This document shows, piece after piece, positions 2,385 through 63,414 of a stretch of DNA of 64,000 bases. Source of the DNA: Neoechinorhynchus agilis. Lineage: Eukaryota; Animalia; Acanthocephala. Position 1 is the stretch's first letter. Every line of letters starts with the position of its first letter. Position numbers and translations under genes: made by a program. Below the pieces are notes generated by a model. That model was not told where the DNA came from and did not search any database. It saw nothing but the letters and a program-made list of their open reading frames with translations. Where the stretch lies: contig CM121343.1 of assembly GCA_051530055.1 (NCBI GenBank), forward strand, positions 5,116,389 through 5,180,388, written 5' to 3'.

Positions 2385-2557
2385 AGTATGTGGCGATGGG
2401 GAAAAATTATATATCAAAGACTGACTTTAATTGAAATATTTCGTCCAATCACACTGGACTTCTTCACTGTGAATTATTGCTTGTCAGCGTTATTGGACGA
2501 AATATTTCAATTAAGGTCAGTCTTTGATATATAATTTTTCCCCAATCGCGACATACT
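2385..2557. repeat. Fold-back repeat (about 65-bp arms) containing a hammerhead-like core
   Basis: Arms 2385-2449 and 2492-2557 are near-perfect reverse complements. Minus strand 2467-2435 reads GTGAAGA A GTCCA gtgtgat TGGAC GAAA TATT. Confidence 0.75.
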
Positions 2558-13883: not shown

Positions 13884-14057
13884 GAATTATTGTTTAGAAG
13901 TCTTCAATCGCGGTAATTATTTATTAAAGACGTTCTGCGAACCTCACCGTGGGTTCATATCATCAGTTCTACAATACAAACCCGACGAGGTTCGCAGAAT
14001 GTATTTTTAATCGAAAAGAAATCATTTACCGCGATTGAAGACTTTAAACAATAATTC
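13884..14057. mobile_element. Family A palindromic repeat, near full length
   Basis: The long inverted arms run gaattattgtttagaagtcttcaatcgcggtaa ... ttaccgcgattgaagactttaaacaataattc. Confidence 0.8.
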
Positions 14058-14175: not shown

Positions 14176-17492
<3,317 letters not shown>

Positions 17493-17771
17493 CCTTATTC
17501 GTCTAAAATACAAGTGTGGAAATTCGACAGTGTGCCACCGCAAAAAAACCTCGATGGACACTGCAATTAGCTTACAAAAAATTCTTCCGGAAATCCAATC
17601 GGACAAACTCGTTAAATTTTTAACGTGCCATTTATAATTTTCAGTTTGTTCAATTTTAACAAATTTATTCGGTATATATGGGCAGCGGCATTTTTTAAAC
17701 AAATTTTTAACTGGTATAAAATTAAAAAAACAAAAACAGTTCGAAAAACATCAACGCTACAGTTCTGGATC

Positions 17772-18155: not shown

Positions 18156-18644
18156 CCATAAATAAAAGTTTAACTTGATTGACTATAATGTATGCACCGA
18201 TACATTCTGTGTATGGGATGGCATGTAAAGATGGTGACTATTATGTCAATCTCTCGACTTATCGATGATGATTACGTTCGATTATGAATACATTTGATCA
18301 ATCATTGAAAAATGGGTGATTCTTGGAAGTTGTCGGGCGTGACAAATGAATTTCTTCTTTAATAAACTCTGGTACAATACTTGGAAGTATTATTTAGGTC
18401 TTCACTCCGTAAATAATATTTCTACCTCACATACCAACATAGATATAAACCGACTTTTCATCGTATTGATCGTCATTTCTCGCGACTTTTGAATAGACTA
18501 CTTGCTTCTCATTCGTTAACTTCCAAAGGTACAGAAGTCCTGGATTGAATCGTCTAAAAATTACACTTTATAGACTGTAAAGAAGTTGTTCATGGAGATA
18601 CTTTGTTTGGGAATATACAGATCAATTTATTAATTCCCTTTCAC

Positions 18645-18676
18645 AATATTTCGTCCGTCTCGTCGAACTTCTTCAG
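18645..18676 (-). ncRNA. Minimal type I hammerhead ribozyme core (candidate)
   Basis: CUGAAGA A GUUC gacgagac GGAC GAAA UAUU: all core nucleotides, a 4-bp stem II, an extra A after A9 and a palindromic AAUAUU helix III. Stem I is only about 2 bp. Confidence 0.55.
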
Positions 18677-18683
18677 GTCTACG

Positions 18684-20407
18684 AAATATTATGAAAGGAA
18701 ATTAATCTCTATTTTCTCAACGTTTTTTAAGTGTTAAAAATACAAGATATAACTATCGAAGATCGTCATTATTTTGAAATGATCTAAAAGCTCCTTTAAT
18801 CGCACGCTGTTTGCAATTACCCATTTTGAAGACTTGATGAAGTCTGACAAGACGGACAAAATATTATGAAAGGAAATTAATCTTTATTTTCTCAACGTTT
18901 TTTAAGTGTTAAAAATACAAGATATAACTATCGAAGATCGCCATTATTTTAAAATGATCTAAAACCTCCTTAAATCGCACGCTGTTTACAATTACCCATT
19001 TTTAAGACTTGAAGAAGTCCGATGAGACGGACAAAATATTTTGAAAGGAAATTAATAAAACATCTATTTTCTCAACGTTTTTAAGTGTTAAAAATACAAG
19101 ATATAACTATCGAAGATCGCCATTATTTTAAATTGATCTAAAACCTCCTTAAATCGCACGCTGTTTACAATTACCCATTTTTAAGACTTGAAGAAGTCCG
19201 ATGAGACGGACAAAATATTATGAAAGGAAATTAATATTTTCCAATTAAGTAAAAATACAAGATATACTATCGAAGATCGTCATTATTTTGAAATGATCTA
19301 AAAGCTCCTTTAATCGCACGCTGTTTGCAATTACCCATTTTGAAGACTTGATGAAGTCTGACAAGACGGACAAAATATTATGAAAGGAAATTAATCTTTA
19401 TTTTCTCAACGTTTTTTAAGTGTTAAAAATACAAGATATAACTATCGAAGATCGCCATTATTTTAAATGATCTAAAACCTCCTTAAATCGCACGCTGTTT
19501 ACAATTACCCATTTTTAAGACTTGAAGAAGTCCGATGAGACGGACAAAATATTTTGAAAGGAAATTAATAAAACTGATGTCTATTTTCTCAACGTTTTTT
19601 AAGTGTTAAAAATACAAGATATAACTATCGAAGATCGCCATTATTTTAAATTGATCTAAAACCTCCTTAAATCGCACGCTGTTTACAATTACCCATTTTT
19701 AAGACTTGAAGAAGTCCGATGAGACGGACAAAATATTATGAAAGGAAATTAATCTCTATTTTCTCAACGTTTTTTAAGTGTTAAAAATACAAGATATGAC
19801 TATCGAAGATCGTCATTATTTTGAAATGATCTAAAAGCTCCTTTAATCGCACGCTGTTTGCAATTACCCATTTTGAAGACTTGATGAAGTCTGACAAGAC
19901 GGACAAAATATTATGAAAGGAAATTAATCTTTATTTTCTCAACGTTTTTTAAGTGTTAAAAATACAAGATATAACTATCGAAGATCGCCATTATTTTAAA
20001 ATGATCTAAAACCTCCTTAAATCGCACGCTGTTTACAATTACCCATTTTTAAGACTTGAAGAAGTCCGATGAGACGGACAAAATATTTTGAAAGGAAATT
20101 AATAAAACTGATGTCTATTTTCTCAACGTTTTTTAAGTGTTAAAAATACAAGATATAACTATCGAAGATCGCCATTATTTTAAATTGATCTAAAACCTCC
20201 TTAAATCGCACGCTGTTTACAATTACCCATTTTTAAGACTTGAAGAAGTCCGATGAGATGGACAAAATATTTTGAAAGGAAATTAATAAAACTGATGTTT
20301 ATTTTCTCAACGTTTTTTAAGTGTTAAAAATACAAGATATAACTATCGAAGATCGCCATTATTTTAAAATGATCTAAAACCTCCTTAAATCGCACACTGT
20401 TTGCAAT
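18684..20407 (+). repeat. Tandem array of about 10 monomers of about 175 bp with A-B-B' higher-order structure and degenerate hammerhead cores
   Basis: Monomer starts (aaaatatt) are at about 18684, 18858, 19032, 19211, 19373, 19546, 19731, 19906, 20081 and 20265. An inverted 56-bp copy lies at 18625-18680. Confidence 0.95.
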
Positions 20408-22044
20408 GACATTATCTCCAAATCATTGAATGGTGAAAGATACTTGCTACAATTGGTAGTTTTACATAAATTAAGAATTGAGTGTAAGTTCTTCGAAGCC
20501 GGGACGCTGAGAAATTTGCATATCATTCCGAAAATACCCCATCGACGTCTTATGATTAAAGGCAGCTTTTAGGGCGACGTCAGTTGCGACGAACGATTAG
20601 TTTTGCATCCATTAAAATAGATCACAGCATCCATATATCGTAAATCATAAAGTGAGAAACCGATTCTCGCTTATCCATAGTGGGAAAATTGGATCACTAT
20701 CGTTTCTAAGCGTCCAAATCCATTGTGCCATCGGTTTTGAACATTTTGTTTGCTTGATATCGGTAATTCTCAGAATGGAATATCGCTGCTATGTAATTAA
20801 AAAATAGGTTCATTCGTTGAAAAACAACAAAAATGTCCTGTTTTCACAGCTTTCTGGCCTTACTTGGAGGTAACTTTATGTTCTAAGAATGTTGCACCAC
20901 GCAAAATCTCAACTAACAATCATTTTAACTATTTATTTAAAGGGCATCACCTACTTAGAGTGAAGATGGTCATTACGTTCAGCAACAAAATCGTTGAACG
21001 AAATCAGTACTACATCCTATTTAATTTCATAATGGCCGTAGTCCAAAATTCATTTTGTTGCCTTCAATGTTCTTTTTTCCTAATGATTTATATCCATTTT
21101 TAACAGCAAATACGACGGTAGAATTTACGTATATTTTATGGCATTTTAAAACATTTTAAAGCTGCGATTTCATTTTTTGTTTATTTTTATTCCTATCGTG
21201 CACAAATTATATTTTTCACTTAAGAAACAAATACGACCATGGAAGGGTTTTAAGTATGATTTTATGCGGTTCCCAGACCATTGAATCAGCGGTGGGCTTT
21301 GTGCCCAAAAGGAGAAATTATCAGCCGTGAAAAAAGAACACAATTAAGCACAGAATAAAAGTTATCAGCTGGCCAGATTTCAAAAAAAGTTAATTTTTGG
21401 TGACAATGCTCTTAAAATTTTGATTATTGATTAGAGTCGCTAATCTGACGGGTAGAGTCGATATCTGTATAGAAGAATGGAATATTTTAAACTTTCAAAC
21501 GGGGAGCACTGTGCAGCGCGGTAGCAATCTTCGAGCAGTCGCAAATTCGTGTTTATTGATCGCACCCGACTTACACGCCGGAGATAGGCGCCTGTAAAAA
21601 CTGATTCAGGCCAATTCCGATGGTGATTTATCGATTGCGATCAACTGTGTGTTTGTTTCTCCGTTATTTTTTTGGGTGGTGCCATTTTAGTTAGACGCCC
21701 AAACGTTTAAACCTTCGTCGAGAGGGAAATTCGGGAAAACGGGATACTGGCTTGGCTTCAATTGTACATTTCGGAGATCGAGTCCCCTTTTGCGTCAGAA
21801 ATATTCCGATGACGTAATCCAAAGAGTGGTGGGCGGTCAAAAGTTTCCGTTTGGACTGTATGCAAACACGCACACCACGTCCGTTGTCTGCACCACCACC
21901 AGCAGCAGCACGTAGCGTTGATGACGACACGAGACGACTACTTTGTGCGTGCGTGTGGATGTTGAATATTGGTAGTGTGCGTACGAAGCTGTATTCTTTG
22001 CTGACATTACAGACGCATATTCTTGGGGCAAATCGGTTAAAGAG

Positions 22045-24697
22045 ATGATCGGTGGTGATCGAACGCGAAACCCAATTGGCACAGGTAGCACCGTGGACTC
22101 TGATTTGCCGCCACCGGGTGGTGTAGGCGATGACGATGGTCCATTTGAGCGTTGTTCGTTGCCCGATGGACACGAAACGCTTAATAGCTTCGAGAAGAAC
22201 ACCAATGCGAATGTTTTTGGAGTTGTGACGAAACAGACTGAAGAGTCGGAGCGTATTGCGAAGGTCACTCGAGTTGAGACCACGATAGTCGTTCGGCGTC
22301 GTAAGAAGCATCTTTTCAGAACGAAAGAAGAATATACATCACCGGAATCCGCTTCGTCTCAATTCGGTGATCAAGCGATTGAACAGAGTGAAAAGATGAT
22401 TGGTTTAAATACTCCTGAGAACACGAAAGGTGAGAAAGTTCATTTGGGCGTTTTTTTGAAAAAGAATGCCAAACACTTTTAGCGAATAAGGAAGTGGATG
22501 ACGTCATCGAGGGCGCTGATGACGAGGAAGGCATTGAACACACGCTTCAAACGTCATACGAAGGTCTTTTTACCTGTAAAGCGAATGAGGAGGATCATGT
22601 GTCCGGAAAAGCTTGTTGGCGTGATCCGGATCTTAATGAACTCGTTGAGTATCTAAATGATCCAGATGATGCGATAAAAGCAAACGCAGCCGCCTATCTT
22701 CAACATCTATCGTACAACAACGACGAAATTAAGGCTTCGATAAAATCCGCAGGCGGAGTGTTAAGTACCGTCCTTTTGCTCAGACACGACAATCCAGTTA
22801 TCCAGAGGAATGCCTGTGGTGTCCTTCTTAATCTTTGTCATGGACTTCAAAATGAATCTAACAAACTTGAAGTGTATAAAGTCGGTGGAATTGAAGCACT
22901 TTCAAATTTAGTTGGGTATTCGGCTTACGAGGATATTAGAGAAACTGCTGCTGCAGTACTCTGGAATATATCTTCATCATCGTTACCTGAAATCAAAATG
23001 ACAATCTTAGATAGCGACTGTCTTAATATACTCGTCCGAACAATAGTAATTCCGTATTCTGGGTGGCATCGGGATGCTAGTAGACGTCTTAATCCTCAAG
23101 GAATTTTCCCGTGTTTATTCAAGAATGCAACTGGTATTTTACGGAATTGTAGTGCCGCTACAACGGATGGTCGTTACCGAGTAAGGTCTTGCTATGGTCT
23201 ATTACCATCACTAGTCCATGCCGTTCAATCTGCGTTGTGCAGTCGCAACGAAGTGAACAGCAAGTGCATTGAGAATTGCATTTGCATTCTTAGAAATCTG
23301 TCTTACAGGATATGCGATCGAGGTTCCCAATGCTATCAACGATCGGGCACCATAACTAGTGCTGACTCATCATCAAGGTCTTCTACGCTGACCGGAAGTG
23401 GTGGAACTATTGGCGGTGAAGGATTCTTCATGAATGGATCAGCTGAATTTCAAGAGCACCAATCCGCCGATTTTTTACGTCATCAGCTTTATCAACTCCT
23501 GCCAGCTCTCGTGACGCTCATTCGAATCAGTACTAACGAGGTCACTGTAGAATCGATTGCCGGAATATTTCAAAACCTTACAAGCTTATCCCAAGATAAA
23601 CACTCATGGAACCAACGCTTCAGATCAGAAATAAGGAAAGCAAAAGGGATTCACGCTCTTATCGAACTTCTGAAGCTTGACAAATGCGATAGGGTTGTTA
23701 GTACTGCAGCCGGAGCTCTTAGGAACCTTGCTATCGACGACGAACGAAATAGAGATATAATTGCCGAATTCGGACTCAAGGATTTGATACTTATTTTAGC
23801 GCATGAGTTCTTTATTGGGCGCAATCTGCAGATTAAAGAACTGATGTCTTACCCGATCCTTTCATTAGATACTCGCTGAATGCGGAATGGTTCACACAGA
23901 ATACAATTGCGTTGTCAATTTCAGCACTCAATGAACTCGTCAAATCCAACGAATTTATTGCTAGAAATACTGCGGAATTGGGTCTTGTGGATCGCCTTCT
24001 CGGAATGTTAAGATCGCCTCACCTTTATTCGATTAAGCTCCTTTCTAGTTGTGCCCATTTGCTTAACACAATGTGGCGGCACAAACAACTTCATGAGCTT
24101 TACAAAAAGATGGGATACTCTAGTAGCGATTTTACATCCCACCAAAAATTGCTTTATCATCTTGCCAGCTCATCGACCGGAGTACCCATGTCAGGGGCGA
24201 GCACATCGTGTCTTATGACATCATCGTACTTTCAGGCAGTTCCGCCGGATAATCACATGAGACAAAGGCGGAGACCTGACGTGAGTGAATGGTCATCCAC
24301 GTGGAGTGGAGTTGCTTTACCTGGCAGTTGGAAAAGCGACAACCTCTCTAGCAATTGTGGAACATCCACCCGAGTATCTTCAGGGAGCAATCCCTTTAAA
24401 ACCCGAGATGAACTTTATCTCCAATCACAATCACTTGCCACCCTATACACGGTTGATGCTGACGCCGGCGATATGATTTCAGGGACGAATCCGCCACTCG
24501 TATCATCCAACGTGCTTAATCAAACAAATTTTAAAGAAAATGATGGTAGCAATAGTGCCTTCCCACTATACGCCACCGTTCGAAAAACAAAAAGACAAAA
24601 CAGCCAGCCAGAATCCAGTTTGCTTCGCCGAAATCACAAAGATAGCACCGGCGCAATTACTAGTGGCATCGACGACCCCGATTCATCGTGGGTTTAA
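22045..24697 (+). CDS. p120/delta-catenin family armadillo protein (introns 22430-22482, 23807-23868)
   Basis: WRDPDLNELVEYL...KANAAAYLQHLSY, NATGILRNCS, KCIENCICILRNLSY, AAGALRNLAID are p120-family ARM motifs, and both GT-AG introns join the ORFs in frame. Confidence 0.9.
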
Positions 24698-26194
24698 TTG
24701 TCATACTTTCACCAGTGAAGAAATGATGTTGTGCCATTCTCCAGATTGAGTGTAGAAATATATAATACTTAGTAGTTCTATAATGTCCGCGTTGTTGTTC
24801 CTTGTACGCAGAGGACTCTTGTTTGTAATTTTCAACGTTTTATATGCTTCTATTAGGGTCACCAGAGAAACGAGAGTGTACAATGATCCTTAAGCTAAAT
24901 AACTTAATTATAGTGATACATTTGTTTTAAACGTCTTTCTCTGTATTTTAGATATTTCACCGAATGATCGTTGCGTTCACGACCTCAAAAAATTGTGTGA
25001 GCGATACTTTAAGATTTAAATTTCGCTAATCTGTTCAACTTCAAGTATCCTGCTGCTTCTTATATTATCATAGACAAAAACGGTGTCCGTGAATGGAGTT
25101 CATTGCAGAATATCTTTTGGGTGTTTCACGCAAAAACTCGTCTGTCTTTTGGAACATTTCGCTGCTGTATAAACGTGTCTTACCGGATAGATGTTCCAAA
25201 GTACTCGGTTATTCACCTTGCTAAAAAAGCAAAGTACACATCCTCTACGGCTTTGAATCTATAAATCAATTCGAAAAGTTAGGAGCAAAGGCTCTTAGCT
25301 CTACTACCATGAATGATTCCCAGCTTTAATCTCATTGAACCCCAAAGCCATCCGCAATTCTAGCGTTTTCGTATAACTGGAAACATTTACCCGAAATCCA
25401 TGAACGACACTGCGCCAATGCATGTGAAATGTTTATAACACAATTGAAAAATTCAAACCAAAGCTTTACTTTCTCAAATGCTTAACGCATCGATTTTTTG
25501 TAGATAAATTGCAAATTCATGAACCGGAAACTCATCTCTCGTGATACCCTATAACCGGTGTAATGTTCTCATTATAAAACGTAGCTGCCGTAATTGCACT
25601 AATAATGATTTAAGGAATTCTTGAAATGCGCCAGGTATAAAGTACTTCGATACTGTTTGAAAATCTTATCTATTAACGCGTAATTATATCTTCCAGTTTA
25701 AGACTGTAATATTGAGATCAAACTCGTCCAGTCTATCGCTTTTAAAATGAGTTGGCTGCAAAACTTGGGTTGTAACTTGTGACGTAGTAAAGTGCCAAAG
25801 CACCAGAAATTGAAATCCTTCGTCGTCTTCATCGTTTCTACTTCCTTTTTAAGCATCCACTTCTGCGTCAATGATTGAAAAAACTAAACGACTATTCTAT
25901 TTCGTTTAATTTCCATTCGAAATCTGTACAACTGTTTGATTGAAATCGGTTTCCTTCAACAGTAATGATCAAATTTATGAAATAGACCAATTACTACTGA
26001 GGCTGTAAAACACTAATAGTTTATTTGTTGCCGTAATTCTTTTTAGTCGTATCTTAGCCTTTGCTTTTAAGATGCATTATTTCCTCACATTTCGAAGCTC
26101 TAATATTTATGCCAAAGTACAAAAACGATCCTTATTCGACAAAAAATGATTCACGCGGTGGTAATTTGTTATTCTTTAACCAACTATTTTCAAG

Positions 26195-27316
26195 TAGAGA
26201 AAATCTCACATTTCAAAAGCATTTAACGATTAAATAGAATCACGAACGTGAGATGTTGAAGAGTAATTAAATGGTAAAATTTAATAGCGTAATGAAATTT
26301 CAGTGCATAATATTTTCACTGGATGATATTAAAGGAAGGAAATTCCTATAATTTTCAATTAGAGAAAATCTCACGTTTTAACGGATTAGCGATTAAATAG
26401 AATCACGAACGTGAGATGTTGAAGAGTAATTAAATGGTAAAATTTAATAGCGTAATGAAATTTCAGTGCATAATATTTTCACTGGATGATATTAAAGGAA
26501 GGAAATTCCTATAATTTTCAATTAGAGAAAATCTCACGTTTTAACGGCTAAATAGAATCACGAACGTGAGATATTGACGAGTAATTAAATAATAAAATTT
26601 AATAGCGTAATGAAATTTAAGTGCATAATATTTTCACTGGATGATATTAAAGGTAGGAAATTCCTATAATTTTCAATTAGAGAAAATCTCACGTTTTAAC
26701 GGCATTTAGCGATTAAATAGAATCACGAACGTGAGATATTGAAGAGTAATTAAATGGTAAAATTTAATAGCGTAATGAAATTTCAGTGCATAATATTTTC
26801 ACTGGATGATATTAAAGGAAGGAAATTCCTATAATTTTCAATTAGAGAAAATCTCACGTTTTAACGGCATTTAGCGATTAAATAGAATCACGAACGTGAG
26901 ATGTTGAAGAGTAATTAAATGGTAAAATTTAATAGCGTAATGAAATTTCAGTGTATAATATTTTCACTGGATGATATTAAAGGAAGGAAATTCCTATAAT
27001 TTTCAATTAGAGAAAATCTCACATTTTAACGGCATTTAGCGATTAAATAGAATCACGAACGTGAGATGTTGAAGAGTAATTAAATGGTAAAATTTAATAG
27101 CGTAATGAGATTTAAGTGCATAATATTTTCACTGGTGATATTAAAGGAAGGAAATTCCTATAATTTTCAATTAGAGAAAATCTCACATTTTAACGGCATT
27201 TAGCGATTAAATAGAATAACGAACGTGAGATGTTGAAGAGTAATTAAATGGTAAATTTAATGGCGTAATGAAATTTCAGTGCATAATATTTTCATTGGAT
27301 GATATTAAAGGAAGGA
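26195..27316 (+). repeat. Tandem array, about 165-bp unit x about 6.8
   Basis: Unit starts (tagagaaaatctc) are at 26195, 26360, 26523, 26678, 26843, 27008 and 27172. Confidence 0.95.
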
Positions 27317-29347
27317 GATTTGTTAGAAGATTCATACTTTTGTTGCCGACACGCACAATAAAACTTCAGTATAATGAAGTGCGGCATAACGTCTAGGAAT
27401 CATAAATGACTATCGAGTTTCCTGACCCGCATTCGTCGTGCTAATATTTTAGTTAATATAATGTCGTTCATTGTTTTTCCTTGCTAGGCGATGTCATTAA
27501 TATTTTTAGCTATCGTTAACATACGAACGAGCTCGTTAAAATTAAAAGCTGTTCGAAACATTTGGACTACGGTTTAGTAGGCTGAAAATCCCATCTATAC
27601 TTTAATGCGTGGCAGCGAGTCATCCCTCGTCTGTCCGGCTGTTAGAAGAAGGTATTTGACAGTTTCCCCCTCCTCTGCATATAGTAGCGTACGAATGTCG
27701 TTGACTGCCCATACGACAGGCGGAAAGGGACTAGATATCAAATGTCATCATATTCTTGATATATTCGTGTGTGTGTGTGGATAGGTTGATCCGTCACGAT
27801 CCGATATTTATCACGGCGCCGCAGAATGCCTAGCACAAAATCACTGTGCACATCTTCTTGCCCATCTCTTTTTTACTATCTAAATCCACCGAGAACTTGA
27901 CGTTATCAGGGATTTTAAGGCAGCATAGCATTGATCCACATCGCATGCTCATCGCAAGCATTACCAAATCCTGACAGTGACAGACATTATTTCCCACCCC
28001 GACCTTTATTATTTATTGTCTTATCCGAGACATTTAATGAAAGAGAAGCGATTATACCACACTCCCACACAACGGCAGCGGTGGCGCGGAAATTGAACCC
28101 ATGTAGCGCTCCCACGCACACCAACCCACCGCCGCTCTAATAATCGTCATGCACGGTACCACCGCTGCTCTAAAGGCTACACATACAAATCGCAAAGTGT
28201 AGATGGAGCAGGAGGCGGATGCACGCGCGCACGCGCGCGCGGTGCTTGTGGGTGGGGGTTGCACACTGTTTTGCGTTTATAAGCCACTTATTCTGAGGTC
28301 GCAGCCATTTGAGTTTCATCCGCCCGTCCCTAGGGATAACTTTGATACTTTTTTGTTGAAAATTATGCTGCAGTAAACAAAAGAAGACGCCCATTTTAAG
28401 GCATCGATAAGGAGAAGTTCTCTATCAGGGAAATCCATACCTTTTTTGTTTTGGTACGAATGCCAAACACTCCCATGTGCCGTTTTTCCATTTGCACACA
28501 TCCCCGTTGTTGAAATAGAAGATTTTCTTAAAGAGTCGGCAAAAGTATTCGTTCGTACCTTCAAATCCGAGTAATGAAGTCTCTTTCCTTTAGTGGCCAC
28601 TAACTTTATAAGTGGTTCTCTATGGGGAAATTTGTTCGAAACGCATAACCCTCAAATACTTGACTTCCTTCAAAGAAAATCTTTTCCCTGTGAAAGCTTC
28701 TCGGTAGACAACGTTGACATCCAGTGTGATCCGAGATGATACTCTCTCTCTCTTTAAATCAGCTAGATCATAATGCTTTTATCTCTCTCTCTTGCGTATC
28801 GATTTTCCTCCTATATGCAATCAGAACGCTATATCTTGAGAACAAATGAGTGGTAAATACCATGATATGGATATTGCTTCTACGATAACTGAACCCGCGT
28901 CGAATAGGCATGCATTGGTAGAAATGTGCTTTGAAGGGAAACAACCTTTTTTTGTAATTCATACATCTGAAGGAAACATTAACCGTGCTGTTTATAAAGC
29001 TAAATTAGTCTTTTTTTCTAAGATTAGATTTATAATCAAAAACCACATCGTTCACTGGCTGGAATTCGTAGGGTTTTTCAGCGCGAATTAACGCATTGCA
29101 CTGAAATAAAAATTGCGTTCTCAGTCAACCACATTGTTCAAAGTCGTTGAGTTTTGATGCTTTTCAAAAATTGAACTAAAACCTTGTCTTTGCTGCGTTT
29201 GCACTATTAGTGCCATTTTGGTTTGCCTTCTGTGGCTGGTAAGATGAAGTGTCGTTTACATCGCAAAGTACTCGCATTTAGATTTAAGATGCCATAACAT
29301 CATCAGGTTTGACGAACTCCTTTTTCTACTACAAGCATACAAGAGAT

Positions 29348-34943: not shown

Positions 34944-35085
34944 ACCGGGGCAATATGATTAGGATTATTGTTTAAAAGTCTTCACCCGGTAAAGATTTTA
35001 TTAAAAACGTTTTGAGAACCTCACCGGGTTCATCATCCGCCTATTGATGGTTCGAAACTTTTTTAAGACTTCTAAACAATAATTC
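34944..35085. mobile_element. Family A palindromic repeat, diverged, with left flank accggggcaatatgatta
   Basis: Termini are ggattattgttta ... ctaaacaataattc, with internal gaacctcaccgggtttcatcatc and ggttcgaaac. Confidence 0.7.
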
Positions 35086-35585
35086 TAATTCGCAAATCAT
35101 TTTGCAATCATCTCTCGTAAGTGGGTAATTAGGAAAGAGTTAAATGGAGCATTAAAATCACAACACCCAACCATGCGTTATGGCGTTACAATGGTAAATT
35201 TAAGAGCGATACCTACTTCCTAATTCTTGATAGCAATTATATCTTATAAATCGCATGGCTATTGGTCTTAATAGAACCCTCCATAGATCCGCGAAAAGGT
35301 ACTTTTAAACAAATCATTGACATCTCATCATAGTATTCGTCTTTTAAAGAAGACAAATTCTCATATGTATGCCTTTTTGGAGGGAATGAATCACCTCGGA
35401 GGTGCCCGAAAATAGACTTCAATGGACATCATTGTCATGCCGTTTAAAAGAAATGTAGGCATGTGATGCATTGTTAAAAATGTATAAGGAAATGGGGGCA
35501 AAAGGTCCTCTTTCGCCCTTACTCATTCGTGACTATCTGTGGTATACTCATTCCTGAGGAAATTGAGAAAAGGCAATAGCTCTCA

Positions 35586-40803: not shown

Positions 40804-43800
40804 GCGTCAAGCCTAGATCTCAGTTCACCTGGAAGATTTTGGCGTTTTACTCGCGACAGAAATAGCAATCCCAGCCTTTGGCTCCTCCGTGCCCCGAACA
40901 AACACGACCTATCAAATGGAGCAAAGAAATCGAACTTCCTTACCTTGCGAATACATTAATTCAAAAACGTTGGTCAGGCCTTTGGTTTGATAAGGAATTC
41001 TGATATTTTTCTGACGTGCTTAGAACATGTAGATATTTAAAGAGTAATTGACGATAGCTTTGGAATTCAATTAGGTGTTTTTTAAGCCGGTTAGTTAACA
41101 TACTTAAGCGAAGAACCAAAACTAAATTATTTTCAAGAAGATTCTATGGTGAAGTTAATGGATTTCAAATTTCCCCTTAGCATGTTTTACACCCAAATGG
41201 CTTATTCGCTTTGATTTGATTTATTATGGGCGGTAATAAACAGATTCGCTTTAACATTTTAAGCGTACTCTGCGAAATTGGAATGACTAAAGAACCGAGT
41301 ATTTCCAGAAAATTAGACTAAAAAGGAGGTAATTACTTAATTTTTCAATCAATGAAGTAAAGATCAATGCTGAAAGCATAATAAAGAATATTCGTTAGTG
41401 AAAATACATCAAAGCGATTAGAACTCTTTTTAAAACACTTTCTCAATAATGGCGATAGAAAATAATAGCAAAATACTAATTTCACATGGACAAAAGGAGT
41501 TAAGAGTGCAATAAGATAATACTGAAGATTCACATACCCTAAATGAATATCTACACAATGGTGTAAGAATCGGCTCCGTCTAAATTGAAGCGAGTTTCCA
41601 TATCCTTATTGGTATCGTTCTTTCTTCAATTCTTTGATTTTTTGCATACTTAAATACTATATCGACCACACTTAAAAAGTGAAGTTAGGTTAATAATAAA
41701 TGAATATACCAAAATATTATTGTTTAGCACAAAAATTATAATAATAACTTAAGCTGATGGTGCGAAGCAACAGTCCAGAACGCTTGGATATCTTGAAAAA
41801 TCGTGTCGAGGGGAGCTCGGCCTTCCACTAGAACTGCCGTCCGTCTCATGTACTCCGCCAGATACGATTTTAGATGATGACGGATTGTTCCTCAATCGGA
41901 AATAATTGTTGACCCTGGCTCAACGCTAAACCGAATTTGTTAGAGTAGGGTTTCTGCAGTTCGGTTGGAGAATTCCACTAAAAATCTTGAACCGGTCTCC
42001 CTACACAACCCTCCAAACAACCACTGTTGAAACAACATCTTTCCTGAGTTATTCTTCGTTTGAAGATCGATTAGAGAATTCCGCTACCTCCAAAAACCAA
42101 CTGTTAATGCAACATCCTTCCTGAGTTATTCTTCCTTTTGGAGAACAAGGTCTCATCTACTTCAACTACTTTGCCGACTCCTCCGATTTTCCACAGCTTT
42201 TTTATTTTATTTATATCCGTTGTCCTACAAAATGAGTCCCATCTTGCTTGGTCGATGCATGGCATGAAAAACTAGCAATAAAATAACAAAAGTTTACATA
42301 ACAAAAGATTAGTTAATGAACTAACCGGCACACTTTTTAGGATCATTAAGGGTATCGGTCCCCATTAAATTACCCTTTACCAACAATTTTAGTGGCCCAA
42401 TAACAAAAATTAAGGAACACGCACACCGTAGCGCGGCGGAGACAAAAAATTAAATAACGAAAATAATAACGAAGTTCAATCTCAAGCACCTGAACAAATT
42501 GCTAGTTTCTTAATGCCCGACATATTGCGGCTTGGTCTGCTCGCTGCATTTCCTTCAACATTTTGCAAATCTGGCTCTGCTGACAAGCATCGAGCTCTGA
42601 GGAGATTGGTACAAGGGAAATCCATATTTTTAGTATTTAAATTTTCCACAGGAAGGATCGCATACATTTCCTTGTAATTCAAAAAGACCAACTGGAAATT
42701 ATTGTGTAATTGAGTCCTTATTTTAGACCAGTAAACAGGTTAGTTTTTTCTATTAAGGGAAAGGAGTAGTACGGATATCTACTCTGACTCGAGACTTCCT
42801 TTCTCTTCCTACAACTAACATCTATATTTAGATATTTGGCTAATGTATACAAATTCATGGATCCTTAAAAAAACTTGGAGCACCCGTAAACGGACTGAGA
42901 AGGATACATTACAGGAAAGTCTCAAAGATGCAGTGCAGAGAGATCAGCAAGGTCACTAGTGTGATGAAGAGAAGATCAAGGAAGAGGTGGCCGATGAGGA
43001 GGACCACGAGATAAGGAAGTCCGAAGAGCGACCATTAACGTTGGATCAATCAAAATCTCAAGCAGAAGTCTAGGAGAAGCGAAAGATTAAAGAACACGTA
43101 AATGGGAGATGTTACACTCAAAGAACCGTTTGACGCTTAAACGTTCAACGTCCTCGTACGTTCATTGTAGTGAATGGAATGGAGCGAGTTGGACAGTGTG
43201 CGGTTCTTTCCTAAAATAGTGGTATGTTTATGGGTGTAGCAAGCGCGAAATTTTCTATAATCTCAGTAACACCCAGAAGATTTTCAACTGGTAGTAATCG
43301 ACAATGGATCGCGAAAGAGAACCTTATAAGAAATGATCACTTCGTAGGTCAAGACAGCGATAAATTCGCGTCAAAGGCTAAGGAGGGATGTTTGGGAGAT
43401 GATTGTGGAAAAGGAGACAGCAGACTTGTATGCATTGCTCCGCTGATTTTCTGTCCATGAAAAACACTCTCCTAACAATTTTCACAAAGCACAGCAAACG
43501 CCTGATGTCGAATGCGCCGCAATTCGCTCTCCATATTACCCCATTCAACCACCCTCATAGAACGCGCAAGCCATCCTCCTTCAAACCGCATCTCTTCAAA
43601 GTAAGCTCAAAGGATACAACCTTTTCTTGAGCCCTGATAAGTGTCCTGCTGCTCAGTCATTTTTAAATAGTAACTGAATCGGAGGAAAGAGCACAACCAA
43701 CGATACTTCGACAACCAAAGATACACGGGGCGGAACTCGCCGTCGCATTGTCTGCGATAACGCCATTCCTTCCCCTTTCAACCGTCCGGGACATAAGTGG

Positions 43801-45299: not shown

Positions 45300-47850
45300 T
45301 TTGACAAAGAATTTCTACCAGAAATATTTGGTTAGGGATAAAAAGGAGGAAAATAAAACATACAACATAAAGAAGTTTTTTTCAACAAAAATGGCAGTGC
45401 TATTTACTTTCTTTGACGCTAGTGGTAAGGAATTGTTCATCTCTATGTTAAAAGATATAAAAATGAAATATATAGTAGCTTTCTAATGTACAATCCCCCA
45501 TTAGAACTAAGTGGAGAAGATTTTAGGGATATTTTCAACAAAACTGGGATACAGCCCATTAAATATTTACAGAGAAACAACTCTAATTACCCCTATGCCT
45601 TGATATGTTCAGCAGCACTAGATGTTGCAGAAAGAGTATGTGGGTCGGGATGTGCATTAAGATCGCATTGGATGACCTTTTCCCAACTTAAAAGTACCAT
45701 TCATGATTATTCGTTAAATGCCAGAGGTGCTGTACTTGGGGGCATTATGCCTCCAACTGCAGCCGGGCTCCTAGGTGCCTTTTATGTGCAGGGGCACACA
45801 TGAAAAATGAATGTACCAATACATCCCAAATAAAGTGCACAAATTGTGCTGAAAACCATCCCGCCTTTGCTAGAAGCTGCAAAAAAAGCAAAAGAATATT
45901 TTGAAAATTCTTTAAACAGTAATACCTTCCCCGCCGTAAGGCCCATGGCTCATAAAAGTTTATTATCGCATAATAATAGTGGCTGGAGCAGAGATAGCCG
46001 CAATTTCCCACATCCATTGGATAGAAGGATAACAGAGATAAATTCTCCATTACTGAGAAATCTGTGTCCAGTCTTGATTCGAAGGGATTTGACTCCCCCA
46101 TAACACCTGAACACAGAATGAGATTAACCTTCTTAGGCAAATTCTAAACTGGATATTACAGCATCTGGGCAACACACTGCCCCCTATACATTCTGTGGTC
46201 TCACCTGACCCGTCAACACCGGACCTGGTGAAGATTCTAAAAGATCTAACCCTTTATACACCTGACAGTAGCAAACGGGCCTACTCGCCTGACTCTGAAG
46301 TTAATATAGCTCCATCGGGACCACGATTGGATATTACGGAAAGCAAAAAAGTTAGGCTCTCGGACTCCCCCGATAATGGATCAAGAGCTTGACTTTTTAT
46401 TTTCTACCTATAATGCTTCTAGAGCATTCAATTTACCTACACACCTAAAACAGTGGACATATTATGCTTTCAAGAGTCAGGCCCTCTTCTCCTCTTTAAT
46501 CACTCAGCATATGATTCATTTATAATCTCACCCTCCGCACCATTAACAAATAACTATATAGGTTTCTCTGGAGGGCTTCAATGCTTTATAAATAGAAATT
46601 TGGCGCCTAAACTCTTATTAGCTGTTAAAACTGACATATTTTCAACTCGGATAATCTCCTTTAATAATCCTTTACGTTCAAAATGCCTTAAACTACCCTC
46701 TTTTCTGATTCTGTTTATATAAGGTACTGATGTTCTTAAAAATTCCTCAAAATTTAATATATAAAATTCAATATTTGATTGAATCAAAAGACTTTTATTA
46801 TGAAATTGATCCAAATAACACAATCTTCCACACTCGTTTCGGTGTTCCCCAAGGATCACCAATTTCACCAACCCTTTTTTTAGCCGTGATGATTTATGTT
46901 TTTAGACAAATTAAAGGCTTTCATAACATATTTCCATTAATCTACGCGGACGACATTTTCCTATTTGGAAAAGCTAGAAATCGATCTGGCTTACTGTCAT
47001 ATATTAGGAATTATCTTAAAATTTTATCTTTGTTATTAAAGAAAGCCAATCTTATAATCAATATGAATAAAACTTTTATTATCCCCCTCACTAAAACTAG
47101 CTCTTCAAGAAAATCATTAATGAATTTACTTAAAAACACAAATGATTTTTCTCACTCTAATATTGTTAAACATTCACGAATTTTAGGCGTTGATTTCCGG
47201 TCTAAAAATCATCGTTTCTTTATTAATACAAATCTTAAAACTACTTTTAGTAAAATTAAGTGTTTACTTAAACGCACTCGTCGTTTGGCTTTTAATCCGA
47301 TTTTTATATACCGGGCATTGAAAACTATCACAGGAGGATCAATATGTTTTTTGCACGAGGACGTCCGCCTGAAAATAGATTCATCTTCTTCAAATATTTT
47401 ATCACTAAAAAACTTATTTTACTCCTTAGGAGTTGACTTTGATCCTCTAGTCTCGTTCTTACATAAATTATTCCTGACTAAAATTTGGTTTTTTACTCCA
47501 GGTGTAAATTACTGTAAATTTATAAGAGCAGACAATAACATTTTTGGGTACCCAGCAAATATACTTCAACAATCAATGGACACTTCGAATATCAAAAATC
47601 ATATAAATATTCTTTCAACGAATGAGCAATTTTTATTTAATATTTTAATGGAATCGATATCTGATTTGGATTCGAGATTGATTACTAACATGTTTTAGTT
47701 TTAACTGTAAGTATTCTCAAAATGGATTCAACAGGAGAAGGAGGTTAAGTATGAGGGAGTTGATCACTCCGACGCTCAACTTAACTTCCTCTTCACTGAT
47801 CAACTACAATACAAGAACTGGATAGAGAGGATTAACTGTGTGTTTGCGTT
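45300..47850 (+). mobile_element. Degenerate APE-type non-LTR retrotransposon (gag-like ORF1 with three Zn knuckles; APE start; RT), internally deleted
   Basis: About 45715-45890 encodes KCQRCCTWGHYASNCSRAPRCLLCAGAHMKNECTNTSQIKCTNCAENHPAFARSC; 46453 encodes DILCFQES..GGLQCFINRNL (APE); 46730-47698 encodes GVPQGSPISPTLF, YADD, LIINMNKT, RILGV. Confidence 0.88.
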
Positions 47851-56433: not shown

Positions 56434-58143
56434 ATGGATTCTAAGAATAGAATAATTCTGAATGTTGGAGGTACCAGATATGAGACTTATAGGCATACGC
56501 TTAAAAAGATACCTGCAACGAGGCTAAGCCGATTGACGGAGGCATTATCCAACTACGACCCAATACTGAATGAATACTTTTTTGACCGGCACCCGGGCGT
56601 GTTCCAGCAAATACTCAACTACTACAGAACCGGAAAATTGCACTATCCAACCAATGTGTGTGGACCTCTATTCGAAACGGAGCTCGAATTCTGGGGATTA
56701 GATTCTAATCAAGTCGAACCGTGTTGCTGGATGACATATACGAAGCATAGGGCTACTCAAGAAACACTTGCAACGCTTGACAAAATTGAACTGGACGAAA
56801 TAAGCACAATGGACGATATGCGACAGAAATTTGGTTGGGACGAATTCGAAACTTTTGCACGTTTACCATGGTATCAGCGATGTCGGCCGTTCATCTGGCA
56901 GTTATTTGACGAGCCTCACTCATCGGTTTATTCAAAGGTTTTAACTGCTATATCCTTATTTTTTGTATTGCTCTCAGTGTTCGTCTTCGTAGCCGAATCT
57001 GTACCTGAGCTACATGATCCCATGGGAACGACGAGTAAGAAGACTGATATCGAGGTATACGGACCAAAAAATTACATCCAAAATACAGGATGTACGGGGC
57101 TTCCATTCGAACGCAACCAACGAATATTAGAATCAGATCACTTACCGAGCATGAATCAATCTCTTGACCGAAGAAATTTAAGTTTAACTCCACCCACTGA
57201 TATCCGCTGTGATCAATTGATAGTTTATAACAGAACTAGCGTACAAAGGATTGAATGTGCCCATCGTTTGCGTACTTTCCTAAGAGCGCTGGACATTACA
57301 AGCAATATCTATTTACTTATTGAAGTAGTCTTGAAGATATTGGTTTGTCCAAGTGTTCATGTGTTTTTCAAATCGACTATAAATGCAATAGATTGCTTCG
57401 CAAGTTGCTGGTACTTTGGCAATCTTGCAGCGCGCACTTTATTGCCAACAATGTTCAATCAAAATTATGCCTTTAATCTACTATCCAACGTACGGATCCT
57501 GAGGATTTTTAAGATATGCCGACACCACACTGGTCTTAGGGTGATTGTTGCGAGCCTACGAAGCAGTGCTCAAGTACTGTGGCTTTTTATACTATTTATT
57601 ACCCTTGGAATGATGATATATGCGACGCTCATATACTACGCTGAGCGGGTAGCATACCGTTGGTGGCACGCAGCTGAATATGTAGATCCTTCGTTGAATG
57701 CCACAAGGGTGACCTCGACCTATAGTCCGGATACAAACGATTATAATACAGGCGAAGACGATAAGAGAAGCATTTTTGATTGGTGGTGGTTTTCTATTAT
57801 TACCGCGTCCACAGTTGGATACGGAGACGTATGCCCGAGAAGTCTCCTTGGAAAGCTTTTTGGGTTTTATTGCGCCGTTTCCGGTGTTATTGTGACGGAT
57901 TTGCCAATGGCAATCATTGTGCAGACGTTTACGGATTTTTATAAACATCAAAGTGCAAGGTCAAAGCTTCCTAGAAAAAGACGAAGAGTGCAAACTGGAG
58001 ACTCAACAGTTAACGCTACACCTGGAAGGTTGAAACAAACTAAAGATCCAAATGTTGTCATGTCACCTGAACATGGAAGGATTACAATATCCACTGCAGA
58101 AATGGGATCATCGGAGGAAAGTTCCATGACAGCCGAATGTTGA
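56434..58143 (+). CDS. Shaw: Shaw (Kv3) family voltage-gated potassium channel subunit, intronless
   Basis: T1 TLKKIPATRLSRLTEALSNYDPILNEYFFDRHPGVF...EPCCWMTY; S4 VRILRIFKICRH; selectivity filter TVGYGD at 57811-57828. Confidence 0.95.
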   Translation: MDSKNRIILNVGGTRYETYRHTLKKIPATRLSRLTEALSNYDPILNEYFFDRHPGVFQQILNYYRTGKLHYPTNVCGPLFETELEFWGLDSNQVEPCCWMTYTKHRATQETLATLDKIELDEISTMDDMRQKFGWDEFETFARLPWYQRCRPFIWQLFDEPHSSVYSKVLTAISLFFVLLSVFVFVAESVPELHDPMGTTSKKTDIEVYGPKNYIQNTGCTGLPFERNQRILESDHLPSMNQSLDRRNLSLTPPTDIRCDQLIVYNRTSVQRIECAHRLRTFLRALDITSNIYLLIEVVLKILVCPSVHVFFKSTINAIDCFASCWYFGNLAARTLLPTMFNQNYAFNLLSNVRILRIFKICRHHTGLRVIVASLRSSAQVLWLFILFITLGMMIYATLIYYAERVAYRWWHAAEYVDPSLNATRVTSTYSPDTNDYNTGEDDKRSIFDWWWFSIITASTVGYGDVCPRSLLGKLFGFYCAVSGVIVTDLPMAIIVQTFTDFYKHQSARSKLPRKRRRVQTGDSTVNATPGRLKQTKDPNVVMSPEHGRITISTAEMGSSEESSMTAEC

Positions 58144-59202
58144 ACAAGAAACGTAATTTTTTGCATAAATCATATTGTTTTCTTGGTCGCTATCGCTGCG
58201 CGGAGAAAATGCAATCGTCATGAACAAACGTTTAAAATTTTAAAGATATTATCCATGGGAATTAATAAACCAATCTCTATTTTTCTTACCACCAAAAAAT
58301 ACATATAAAAATGATTTAATTTGAATAACATTTCGTCCTCTACGTGGGACTACTTCAGAGCTGCTTGTAAGTTTTTTCAAGTACCGAAATATTAATCAAA
58401 TTAAATCATTTTTCTTTATTTCGCTTAATCAAAAACTTTTAGCGGAGCGCAGAACGACGAAGTGCACGACTCAATGACACTTCGAATCTTGGTGATCTTC
58501 ATTTCTGAATATCTCAAGATAAAATGGATTAAGATGGACTAAATTTTTGCTCGAATTGACGATGCACTCGTTGATAAGCGGCAGCTTAAGTGATGCTACT
58601 TGCTAAAATCTTAGCGTCCTCAAGTTCGGTTCTTAGGCGAAGAAATTTATAATTAATGTATGCAATGTGCTGTTAGATTGGTACCAACTTTTTACAATTA
58701 AAATGATGATCGAATGGTGAAAGTAAATTTTAAAGCAAAAGTATAGTCTCGATTCAACTTTATTTAGGTTAGAAGTAAAGAACCGAACAAAAACAATCAA
58801 GGGTGGATTAAGATGGATAGCTTTGGGAGTTGATTCCCGTGTTTTTTGCTTTGGCAGGTGGCACCATTATTCGATTATTAATTAAATGTTTCGTTGCCGG
58901 ATAAATGATTTAATTTATTAAGATTAAGTGTCTTCATCAGAAGAAGGAACTTGAACTAACCTTTTATCAGTGATTGGCGTTACAATCGGCTTTAAAGCCG
59001 AGTAAGGGATGTTTCAACACTTAATCAATACAAACGGCTAGCCAGGAGACAGGAGAATTAGATTATTGATTTTATCTCAATCAAGTTAAGTTGAATTCAT
59101 ACTTTTTGGTGTCGTTGACATTAAAAGCGAATTTAAAAATAGACGCACATTTTCAACTTTTTTTGAAGCAAATCTTTTAATTGTTTGAAAATTGAACTAC
59201 TC

Positions 59203-59370
59203 ATGTCGATATGTGAGGTACAGGGGAATGTGCCACGGCAAATGATTATTTCGATTAAAGGCGTTCTGCGAACCTCGTCTGGTTCATCATCAGTTCTAGG
59301 TTAACCACTTGTATTTTAGAACTGATGATGAACCCGACGAGGTTCGCAGAACGTCTTTAATCGAAATAAT
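59203..59370. mobile_element. Family A palindrome (54-bp arms 59245-59298 / 59317-59370) with left flank
   Basis: The arms match at 52/54 positions; plus strand 59322 reads CTGATGA T GAAC ccgacgag GTTC GCAGAA CGTC. Confidence 0.85.
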
Positions 59371-59371
59371 G

Positions 59372-59477
59372 AACTATTCATGCTTGTTTATAGCGTAAAA
59401 TTGAAGGAATTTATTAAATCTGATATTTCGGCACGGGTTTTTAAGTGCGTTTCCGCCGTAAACAAGCATGAATAGTT
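59372..59477. repeat. Small element with perfect 19-bp terminal inverted repeats
   Basis: aactattcatgcttgttta (59372-59390) and taaacaagcatgaatagtt (59459-59477). Confidence 0.6.
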
Positions 59478-60599
59478 AAATTTTTAAACCTTTTTAGAAT
59501 CAGCGGAACGTGAAGTACTTAATGGTTACACTTGCTTCAAATATTCTCAAAATAAACAAACGACCATTATTCTTATGGATTCGAGAGTTCATCAAACTCA
59601 AACGTCTTAATCAGAAATAGGAACTAGGACTAGCTTTTCATCAATATTTTGAATTACCATAAACCGACCAACCAAGAATACAATTAATCAACTACTTTTC
59701 GGTAGTGCATTAATCAAACCAACTAAGCATTGATTACATTTTAAGATGATGAATTAAAAACATATAAGAAATTACAGGATCTTTAGGCAAAGAAATGGGG
59801 AGCTTTTGACCCTTTTTAGGCCGTCTGAAAATAATTGCATAAGCGTTACGGAGTTCAGATAAACCGTTATTCTTTACGCGCATCGATCCAGATATACCTC
59901 CAACCCGTTAGTTTAATCTTCAGAAACGAAAATTGGCTACGCGATCATTGAAAGTGGCTGTTCTCAAAACTGGAAGGCTTCGAGTGTCCTGTCGATTGGC
60001 CAACGAACCCGTCAAACAACCACGATTTATCAAGATCTTTTTAATATTTCTAGTTTTTTATGGTTAGTCGGACGTACTTCGTTGCAATAGTTCATTTCCA
60101 CGTTAGAATCAAAAGTGGATCGCCACCATTCGCTAATTTGACCAAAAACAAATAAAACGTGTTATTATTTATCTTAAAAAGATTCCACGTTGTGCTACGA
60201 TTTCACTATCGAATATTGCAGTAGTGATTATTCGTTGGCAAGTATTAGCAAATGCGCTAATGAGGCGGCTAGCAAAACCACGATGCGTTTTTTCCGGTGG
60301 TACCCACTTGATCACTCCTTTATCGACGAAGCTCAATATAAAATTTTGTGTTAAAATTAAGAATACAATTTTAAGGCAATTTTAACTTTGAACACGTGTT
60401 TGCGATTCCTCTTGTCTGCTGCCAAGTGAGTTCGTCGGATAAAATTGCTATGTTTCGTATTGCGATGCGAGTGATTATGGATTCACTTTTCGTTGTCCGC
60501 GTGATATTTAGAACCTTCACTAAGTTAAAACACAAAGCTTATTAAAGGCCCATGCTTATCAAACAAGGAAAAAAAGATATCATGCAAATCGATCACCGG

Positions 60600-63073: not shown

Positions 63074-63414
63074 CGAATCTAAATGTGAAGTGGAAAGAGA
63101 ACACGCAACCGAGGAAATACCCAAACCACACAGGAGTTTGTCGGTAGTCGGAAATCGCCATAACTTCCATTCTTCCGTATTAGGAAATTGATTCTTTCTT
63201 TGTGCGTCATTCTGGGATTCCATTTTGCATTTGTGTTCAAAAAATGTACGATGGTACTTGGAGTCTATTTCTGGGATATGTTACAAGATTAACGCACTTA
63301 ACAAGGACTCTGAAATTCCATATTGAACGCTTTTTCTAAAAAATCAATCACCGAGAAGCCTTAATTTATGGTAAAATGTCGAAACCGAACGATCTAATGC
63401 CGTTTTTAGATAAG

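Follow-up and report, generated by a model that had tools for sequence, protein, structure and literature searches.

A tandem array with a hammerhead-core-like motif and an inverted edge copy in the acanthocephalan Neoechinorhynchus agilis

Minimal hammerhead ribozymes of Penelope-like elements (PLEs) have no loop on helix III; their GAA is followed by A15.1-N-N'-U16.1-H17 with a palindromic dinucleotide, an unpaired extra nucleotide lies between A9 and position 10.1, and the G10.1-C11.1 pair is conserved (PMC4209133). They function only as dimers and weakly in vitro, and a variant from Drosophila virilis has a helix I of 2 bp (PMC4209133). PLE insertions are partial tandems that lack part of their 5' end; right next to that end there is often an inverted copy, likewise 5'-truncated, and non-autonomous relatives form multicopy head-to-tail insertions (PMC8557442). 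Animal retrozymes are AT-rich intergenic tandems of 150-450 bp monomers that are linked to PLE pseudo-long terminal repeats (pseudo-LTRs) (PMC7229834; bioRxiv 10.64898/2026.07.22.740005). The systems described are newt satellite 2, Schistosoma Sm-alpha and the coral, mussel and axolotl retrozymes (PMC7229834). Here we describe a tandem array of short non-coding repeats in a 64,000-nt stretch of Neoechinorhynchus agilis DNA (assembly GCA_051530055.1, contig CM121343.1, about 5,116,389-5,180,388; hereafter the window), in which each complete monomer carries a string resembling a hammerhead core. We favor, with confidence that is about evenly balanced by doubt, the explanation that the array is dead and arose by satellite-like amplification of a hammerhead-type repeat, minimal or core-only. 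The array and its edge comprise the following features.

18684-20407, plus strand: tandem array of 9.8 monomers of 160-184 bp, 29% G+C, from Tandem Repeats Finder, monomer alignment and an identity matrix
18684-19212, 19213-19730, 19731-20264 and, partial, 20265-20407: A-B-C higher-order units
18834-20271, plus strand: nine core-like strings of 32 nt each with U3 and A12, from pattern search and descriptor scan
18834, 19009, 19188, 19348, 19522, 19706, 19881, 20056 and 20240, plus strand: starts of these nine strings
18607-18680, minus strand: inverted truncated partial copy of the repeat, 75 nt, 84% identical to the monomer junction by blastn (E 7.6e-15)
18645-18676, minus strand: perfect minimal-hammerhead-type core, CTGAAGA-A-GTTCG ACGAGA CGGAC-GAAA-TATT
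18629-18706: fold-back junction with arms 18629-18654 and 18681-18706 (26 nt each, 92% complementary) and a 26-nt spacer

Tandem Repeats Finder reported the array with a period of 175, 9.8 copies and 90% matches. A pattern search returned exactly nine plus-strand copies of TTGA[A/T]GA-A-GTC[C/T]G..[C/T]GGAC-AAAA-TATT and one minus-strand string, CTGAAGAAGTTCGACGAGACGGACGAAATATT, at 18645-18676, against a chance expectation of 0.00 for the core pattern. The tandem array with nine such strings that a preliminary description of this DNA had listed is thereby borne out. The array consists of about 3.3 copies of a 534-bp A-B-C higher-order unit, with monomers m1, m4 and m7 of type A, m2, m5 and m8 of type B, and m3, m6 and m9 of type C. 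In the monomer identity matrix the three B monomers are 100% identical, the C monomers share 99-99.5% identity, and the A monomers m1 and m7 share 99.4%; the deletion-bearing m4 is 93.8% identical to both. Between types the identity is 93-94% for A versus B and 97.7% for B versus C. Monomers three apart are 99.4-100% identical (m4 excepted), versus 92-98% for neighbors, which is the pattern of a higher-order-repeat satellite, where monomers k units apart are more alike than adjacent ones. The 99-100% identity of the trimer blocks implies that the last growth step copied 534-bp units. The simplest account of this final amplification would be unequal exchange or replication slippage of DNA, and the block copying looks like DNA-level exchange rather than a circle-driven process. 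The earlier proposal of a ribozyme retroelement amplified as a satellite is upheld in part only: none of the copies is an intact ribozyme, and the last step was block copying of the 534-bp unit.

The cores read TTGATGA in type A and TTGAAGA in types B and C. Since three types were copied threefold as blocks, the nine cores amount to two or three independent sequences; all nine disabled cores exist as strings and not as nine separate observations. A core with two mismatches and a 5-bp stem occurs 30 further times in the 128 kb of both strands, a chance rate of about 8% per 175-bp monomer. Because it is so common, the disabled motif of the array taken alone is weak evidence. Under the same descriptor the perfect core has no other occurrence.

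The inverted copy takes in the core with 4 nt upstream of it and about 46 nt beyond, and falls outside monomer types A, B and C. It displays every core feature of a minimal hammerhead (CUGAAGA, A, G...C, GAA, A-UA-U, U), in the form of C3UGAAGA9, the extra A, stem II GUUCG/CGGAC with loop ACGAGA, G12AA, A15.1-UA-U16.1 and U17. A minimal descriptor, in which stem II was constrained at the closing pair only and helix I was not required, gave two perfect matches in the window (18676 and 61528, both on the minus strand). In 300 dinucleotide-preserving shuffles the mean was 0.05 matches and 0/300 reached two. When one substitution is allowed, five loci outside the array match (2467, 16515, 18676, 58358 and 61528), all on the minus strand and all inside short palindromic repeats. 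The resemblance to a hammerhead core is therefore not casual.

Related dispersed copies were recognized by nhmmer at 2467 (E 1e-10) and 58358 (E 5.5e-13).

2397-2544, minus strand: copy L1, a palindrome with 60-nt arms, 95% complementary
58307-58413, minus strand: copy L3, a palindrome with 29-nt arms, 93% complementary

The L1 core (2435-2467, minus strand) reads GTGAAGA-A-GTCCAGT GTG ATTGGAC-GAAA-TATT, with G at position 3 and a stem II of 7 bp. The L3 core (58327-58358, minus strand) reads CTGAAGT-A-GTCC..GGAC-GAAA-TGTT, with U at position 9, and its homology to the monomer extends about 90 nt downstream of the core, to about 58273. Neither L1 nor L3 has sharp ends. Across the aligned family, U4-U17 form a nearly invariant block while the flanks and loop 2 diverge, loop 2 being the most variable. 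All copies of the array family have the extra A after A9, and the minimal dimer-type A-UA-U followed by U17 is found throughout, with UA at positions 15.2/16.2 (UG in L3). Helix II with its G10.1-C11.1 closing pair is present as a 5-bp stem (7 bp in L1), compared with 7-8 bp in the Schistosoma minimal hammerheads (PMC4209133). Of the stem II cells in the alignment 97% are paired. A single compensatory change, of the kind considered in the preliminary description, replaces G-C by A-U in L1, and three further single changes are wobble-compatible.

The full canonical core, C3-A9 plus G12-A14, is retained in a single copy of the family, at 18645-18676 on the minus strand. Core deviations differ from copy to copy (G3 in L1, U9 in L3, U3 and A12 in the array), and the majority base at each core position of the alignment is that of the canonical core. 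The outgroup copies L1, L3 and the inverted copy carry G12 in 3/3 cases and C3 in 2/3 (L3 and the inverted copy); U3 and A12 of the array are therefore derived. Both are common to types A, B and C, so the core changes preceded the amplification, in agreement with the earlier claim that inactivation came first. An additional argument for the direction of the G12-to-A change from CpG decay was dropped, the CpG observed/expected ratio of the window being 1.14.

The first array junction reads ACGAAATATT, with tACGAAATATT at 18680-18690. The inverted copy and this junction form the arms of one palindrome, whose breakpoint is 18680/18681 and whose spacer contains the 5' half of the core. The two observations of G12 are consequently linked and not independent: the GAAATATT string at the junction is as previously listed, and its role as a second witness of G12 is lost. 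As RNA the fold-back junction is predicted to form a hairpin of -36 kcal/mol (z = -5.9) that pairs G12-U17 and so buries these core positions. The CTGAAGA...GAAA-TATT string of the inverted copy was also correctly noted before, with a start at 18625 that is replaced by the span 18607-18680. That intact core does not make an intact hammerhead, given a helix I of just 2 bp and G12-U17 locked in the hairpin. Every family copy in the window has an inverted truncated partner. The fold-back edge is thus a family-wide feature and not a unique birth intermediate, and to call it a satellite-birth intermediate was an overstatement.

With respect to known systems, the copies share with the minimal hammerheads of PLEs the CUGANGA core, the unpaired extra nucleotide, G10.1-C11.1, the loop-3-less palindromic GAA-A-N-N'-U and H17, as well as the occurrence of numerous diverged copies, mainly single, some nearby on opposite strands, and tandem copies (PMC4209133). 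Unlike those ribozymes, with their helix I of 4-5 bp (PMC4209133), every copy here lacks helix I, the window shows no PLE open reading frame (ORF) or pseudo-LTR, and G12-A14 finds its complement in the left palindrome arm. The closest described category for these copies is the HHR_core of Naiad elements, a cuganga...gaaa string with a spacer of 7-17 nt that fits no stem/loop descriptor; Naiad elements also show partial tandem insertions with an adjacent inverted 5'-truncated copy (PMC8557442). The Naiad HHR_core lies in the 3' untranslated regions of autonomous 3.4-4.4 kb elements, whereas only short non-coding repeats are found here.

Similarity to non-LTR retrozymes and hammerhead satellites lies in the 150-450 bp tandem monomers, the low G+C content, the intergenic position, one hammerhead-like motif per monomer and a few to tens of copies per array (PMC7229834). 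Retrozymes contain complete, cleaving type I hammerheads and give abundant, highly self-paired circular RNAs (PMC7229834). The array differs from them in its mutated core, absent helix I, RNA that is not unusually structured and three-monomer higher-order structure. The retrozyme-like character assigned to it in the preliminary description survives for a monomer size of 175-184 bp, base composition and location, and not for a complete type I hammerhead in each monomer. Ordinary higher-order satellite DNA is matched by the block-copied A-B-C unit (99-100% identity), the divergent edge copy and the inverted duplication at the boundary. The array is unlike an ordinary satellite in that its monomer derives from a dispersed family of which the conserved block resembles a hammerhead core.

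On the favored explanation the array was built from one member of a dispersed short-repeat family whose best-conserved block is the hammerhead-core motif. The order of events can be read from the sequence. The ancestral family state was C3 and G12, after which the lineage that founded the array gained U3 and A12. A short tandem then split into types A, B and C (2-7% divergence), and the 534-bp A-B-C unit was copied about three times, very recently, to leave the 99-100% identity. The inverted truncated copy at the 5' edge of the array forms the fold-back palindrome, with like partners at L1 and L3. The family itself may have spread via RNA, by Penelope-like or retrozyme-like machinery that leaves head-to-head truncated copies. 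The array with its edge copy, like L1 and L3 with their head-to-head pairs, fits the Penelope-like insertion picture. The fit is circumstantial, because the window has no PLE gene, no target-site duplication was found, the array ends mid-monomer and palindromic, MITE-like repeats abound throughout.

Several results weigh against a hammerhead-type origin. The first is the missing helix I: at the five loci the base-paired runs anchored at its start measured 2, 1, 1, 0 and 3 bp, where the null mean is 0.64 bp and random anchors reach at least 4 bp with a probability of 0.025. The array copies have a 0-bp helix I when anchored at 1.1/2.1, and no copy attains the 4-5 bp typical of minimal hammerheads. 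Helix I is needed by every hammerhead, and position 12 is the general base. With helix I missing and G12-U17 of the inverted copy sequestered, no copy in the window is predicted to self-cleave; on this model the array would be a dead relic and not a working ribozyme element. A relaxed type I/type III descriptor gave solutions at noise level, at best a 2-bp helix III with a 3-bp helix I, and no canonical helix III hairpin or cleavage site. The Rfam hammerhead models (Hammerhead_1, _3, _II, HH9 and HH10) had no match at gathering score or at E <=10 in the 64 kb, a 2.3-kb segment or a 301-nt segment; these models include the helix III loop and may therefore miss minimal forms. The identification of the motif as a hammerhead core, made in the preliminary description, holds in that the motif resembles a minimal-type core beyond chance, and fails for a complete ribozyme.

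Other results point in the same adverse direction. The left palindrome arm pairs with G12-A14 at every locus, and the pairing extends even into C11.1, which is better explained by inverted duplication of DNA than by a ribozyme helix III. For L1, L3 and monomer types A, B and C together, RNAalifold predicts a weak three-way junction (-11.5 kcal/mol, covariation term +0.32) that joins UGAAGAA to a U-tract lying about 50 nt downstream. The array stops mid-monomer, at 20407, and no target-site duplication was found around it, just chance matches of 8-10 nt. Neither a Penelope-like reverse transcriptase nor a GIY-YIG gene was found in the 64-kb window, where the sole reverse-transcriptase fragment is LINE-like. 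No relatives beyond the window were found: two patterns run against public metagenome contigs, and one against viral contigs, had 0 matches.

Two ways to complete the ribozyme were rejected. A GUA/GUCUAU site at 18499 could supply the inverted copy with a 6-bp helix I, at a chance probability of about 0.04 by hand estimate, and would need a 145-nt helix III closed by 2 bp. A type III reading with the palindrome arms as helix III left a spacer of 8-33 nt without closing pairs for helix I, and the arms take up G12-A14 as well. All monomers also contain ATTTTTAAGACTTGAAGAAGT and, about 55 nt further downstream, ACGTTTTTAAGTGTTAAAAAT, the two being 81% complementary (19075-19095 with 18998-19018 / 19177-19197), so that the putative 5' half of the core can enter a long helix, as in the three-way junction predicted for the B and C monomers.

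The best-surviving alternative is chance resemblance, in which the array would be an ordinary AT-rich satellite whose source was a palindromic DNA repeat of the MITE-like or fold-back type, and its CTGANGA...GAAA strings were never ribozyme parts. We regard this as a possible explanation, to be taken seriously without being preferred. The conserved block might then be a protein-binding site or an element hairpin. The absence of helix I from all copies and the lack of an Rfam match agree with it, as does the pairing of the palindrome arms through GAA, which a DNA-level inverted duplication predicts. The string CTGANGA by itself is not enriched (36 versus 30 expected), and the two-mismatch core occurs 30 times per window. 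Short palindromic elements fill the window, which has 16 inverted-repeat pairs with arms of at least 20 nt at most 120 nt apart. Of the five loci, those at 16515 and 61528 belong to palindromic families distinct from that of the array.

16433-16568: member of a second, MITE-like family, 136 bp, with terminal repeats ATTAGAATTATTGTTTAGGTCT and relatives at 13926-14006, 34958-35089 and 59245-59370
61460-61618: third palindromic element, with 69-nt arms, 77% complementary

The second family thus has classical terminal inverted repeats, and its internal palindrome contains CTGATGA-T-GAACC..GGTTC-G(CA)GAAC-GTC; one copy, with its core at 16484-16515 on the minus strand, sits in an MCM3 intron and differs from the minimal hammerhead core by one base, G at 15.1. 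On the minus strand of the third element, 61496-61528 reads CTGATGA-GTCGAGGCTTCCTCTTTC-GAAA-TAT-C. The minimal-hammerhead core there is perfect, with an interrupted stem II and no helix I. The three motif families may belong to a single superfamily, in which case the enrichment would count as one event.

Chance resemblance is less easily reconciled with the two perfect matches, against the 0.05 expected and 0/300 shuffles with at least two. The match also takes in minimal-hammerhead features on which the preliminary description did not draw, namely the extra base, G10.1-C11.1 and the palindromic 15.2/16.2. Furthermore the core block is kept while flanks and loop 2 diverge, the deviant copies each have their own core change or changes around a canonical majority, and stem II remains paired with one compensatory change.

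An extension of the hammerhead reading, which we consider unlikely, is that this poorly sampled lineage carries a superfamily of short palindromic repeats with a hammerhead core, stem II and minimal helix III and no helix I; at least three motif-bearing families lie within the 64 kb. If true, this would be either a hammerhead of new arrangement, whose substrate strand comes in trans or from the fold-back arm, or a snapshot of ribozyme retroelements decaying into palindromes and satellites.

A hairpin-RNA locus, in which the fold-backs at 18629-18706, 2397-2544 and 58307-58413 are the functional elements, fold as transcripts into long perfect hairpins and give small RNAs, with the array incidental, has little probability. 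The hairpin fold (z = -5.9) would suit it, and several microRNA-precursor models gave sub-threshold matches that reflect hairpin shape only. These lie far under the gathering scores (e.g. 39.8 vs 80), the arm sequences vary between loci, and insertion or replication errors would be expected to leave palindromes behind. Least probable of all, and indeed remote, is a living retrozyme, in which the array or a master copy resembling the inverted one would be transcribed and self-cleave as a dimeric minimal hammerhead to give circles of about 175 or 534 nt that are reverse-transcribed into new tandems: the monomer size, low G+C content, tandem arrangement and intergenic position fit non-LTR retrozymes, and minimal hammerheads are dimer-only and weak in vitro, with a helix I of 2 bp in the D. 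virilis variant (PMC4209133), but all nine array cores have A12 at the general base position and U3 opposite G8, helix I is absent, the lone perfect core has no tandem context on its own strand and is buried in the -36 kcal/mol hairpin, the array RNA is not unusually self-paired (z = -1.2 over a 533-nt unit; junction windows range from -0.5 to -2.2), and the trimer block identity points to DNA-level copying.

The window is animal nuclear DNA. It encodes a protein kinase, a WD40 protein, MCM3, an Arm-repeat protein, a RhoGAP, a diacylglycerol kinase and a Shaw-type Kv channel, mostly with long exons. The top matches of these proteins, to acanthocephalan, rotifer, nematode and arthropod proteins, are just 40-50% identical. 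The G+C content is 39%, and the CpG ratio given above means that CpG is not depleted. The array is non-coding and intergenic, between the following neighbors.

14176-17702, minus strand: MCM3 gene, on one flank of the array
21691-22311: unannotated ORF, on the other flank

Exact-protein look-ups of the neighboring ORFs, aimed at other haplotypes, returned no record, and a tRNA scan of the window found none. A decayed reverse-transcriptase ORF at 46730-47698 (plus strand) has the motifs GVPQGSPISPTLF and YADD and a Pfam RVT_1 match (5.8e-15); it looks like a LINE-type fragment and had no homologue at E <=1e-5 in a length-limited protein search. The Shaw-type Kv channel is a single-exon ORF at 56434-58143, within which 57814-57926 (plus strand) matches Rfam RF00485, the potassium-channel RNA editing signal, with 41.1 bits (E 1e-4), below the gathering score of 51. 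Another tandem array spans 26186-27320, with a 165-bp unit in 7.0 copies (94% matches) and a 9-bp inverted repeat inside, TCTCACGTT...AACGTGAGA; no hammerhead-like core was found in it and it has no fold-back edge. More short inverted-repeat pairs lie at 59364-59485, 2864-2958, 41790-41878 and 62989-63080, and the string CGAAATAT occurs 10 times versus 5 expected, often in or beside palindromes.

Hammerhead satellites, retrozymes and their decayed copies are already known, which makes the novelty of the locus modest; what is unusual is that helix I is lacking throughout and that the motif goes with palindromes. For genome scans the locus shows that a perfect CUGANGA...GAAA core with a good stem II does not equal an intact ribozyme, and that the copies in a higher-order array are not independent observations. 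If the motif is hammerhead-derived, the locus documents how a ribozyme-type repeat lost two bases of its core and was afterwards multiplied into an ordinary satellite with higher-order structure. This would extend minimal or core-only hammerhead repeats to a lineage without close sequenced relatives.

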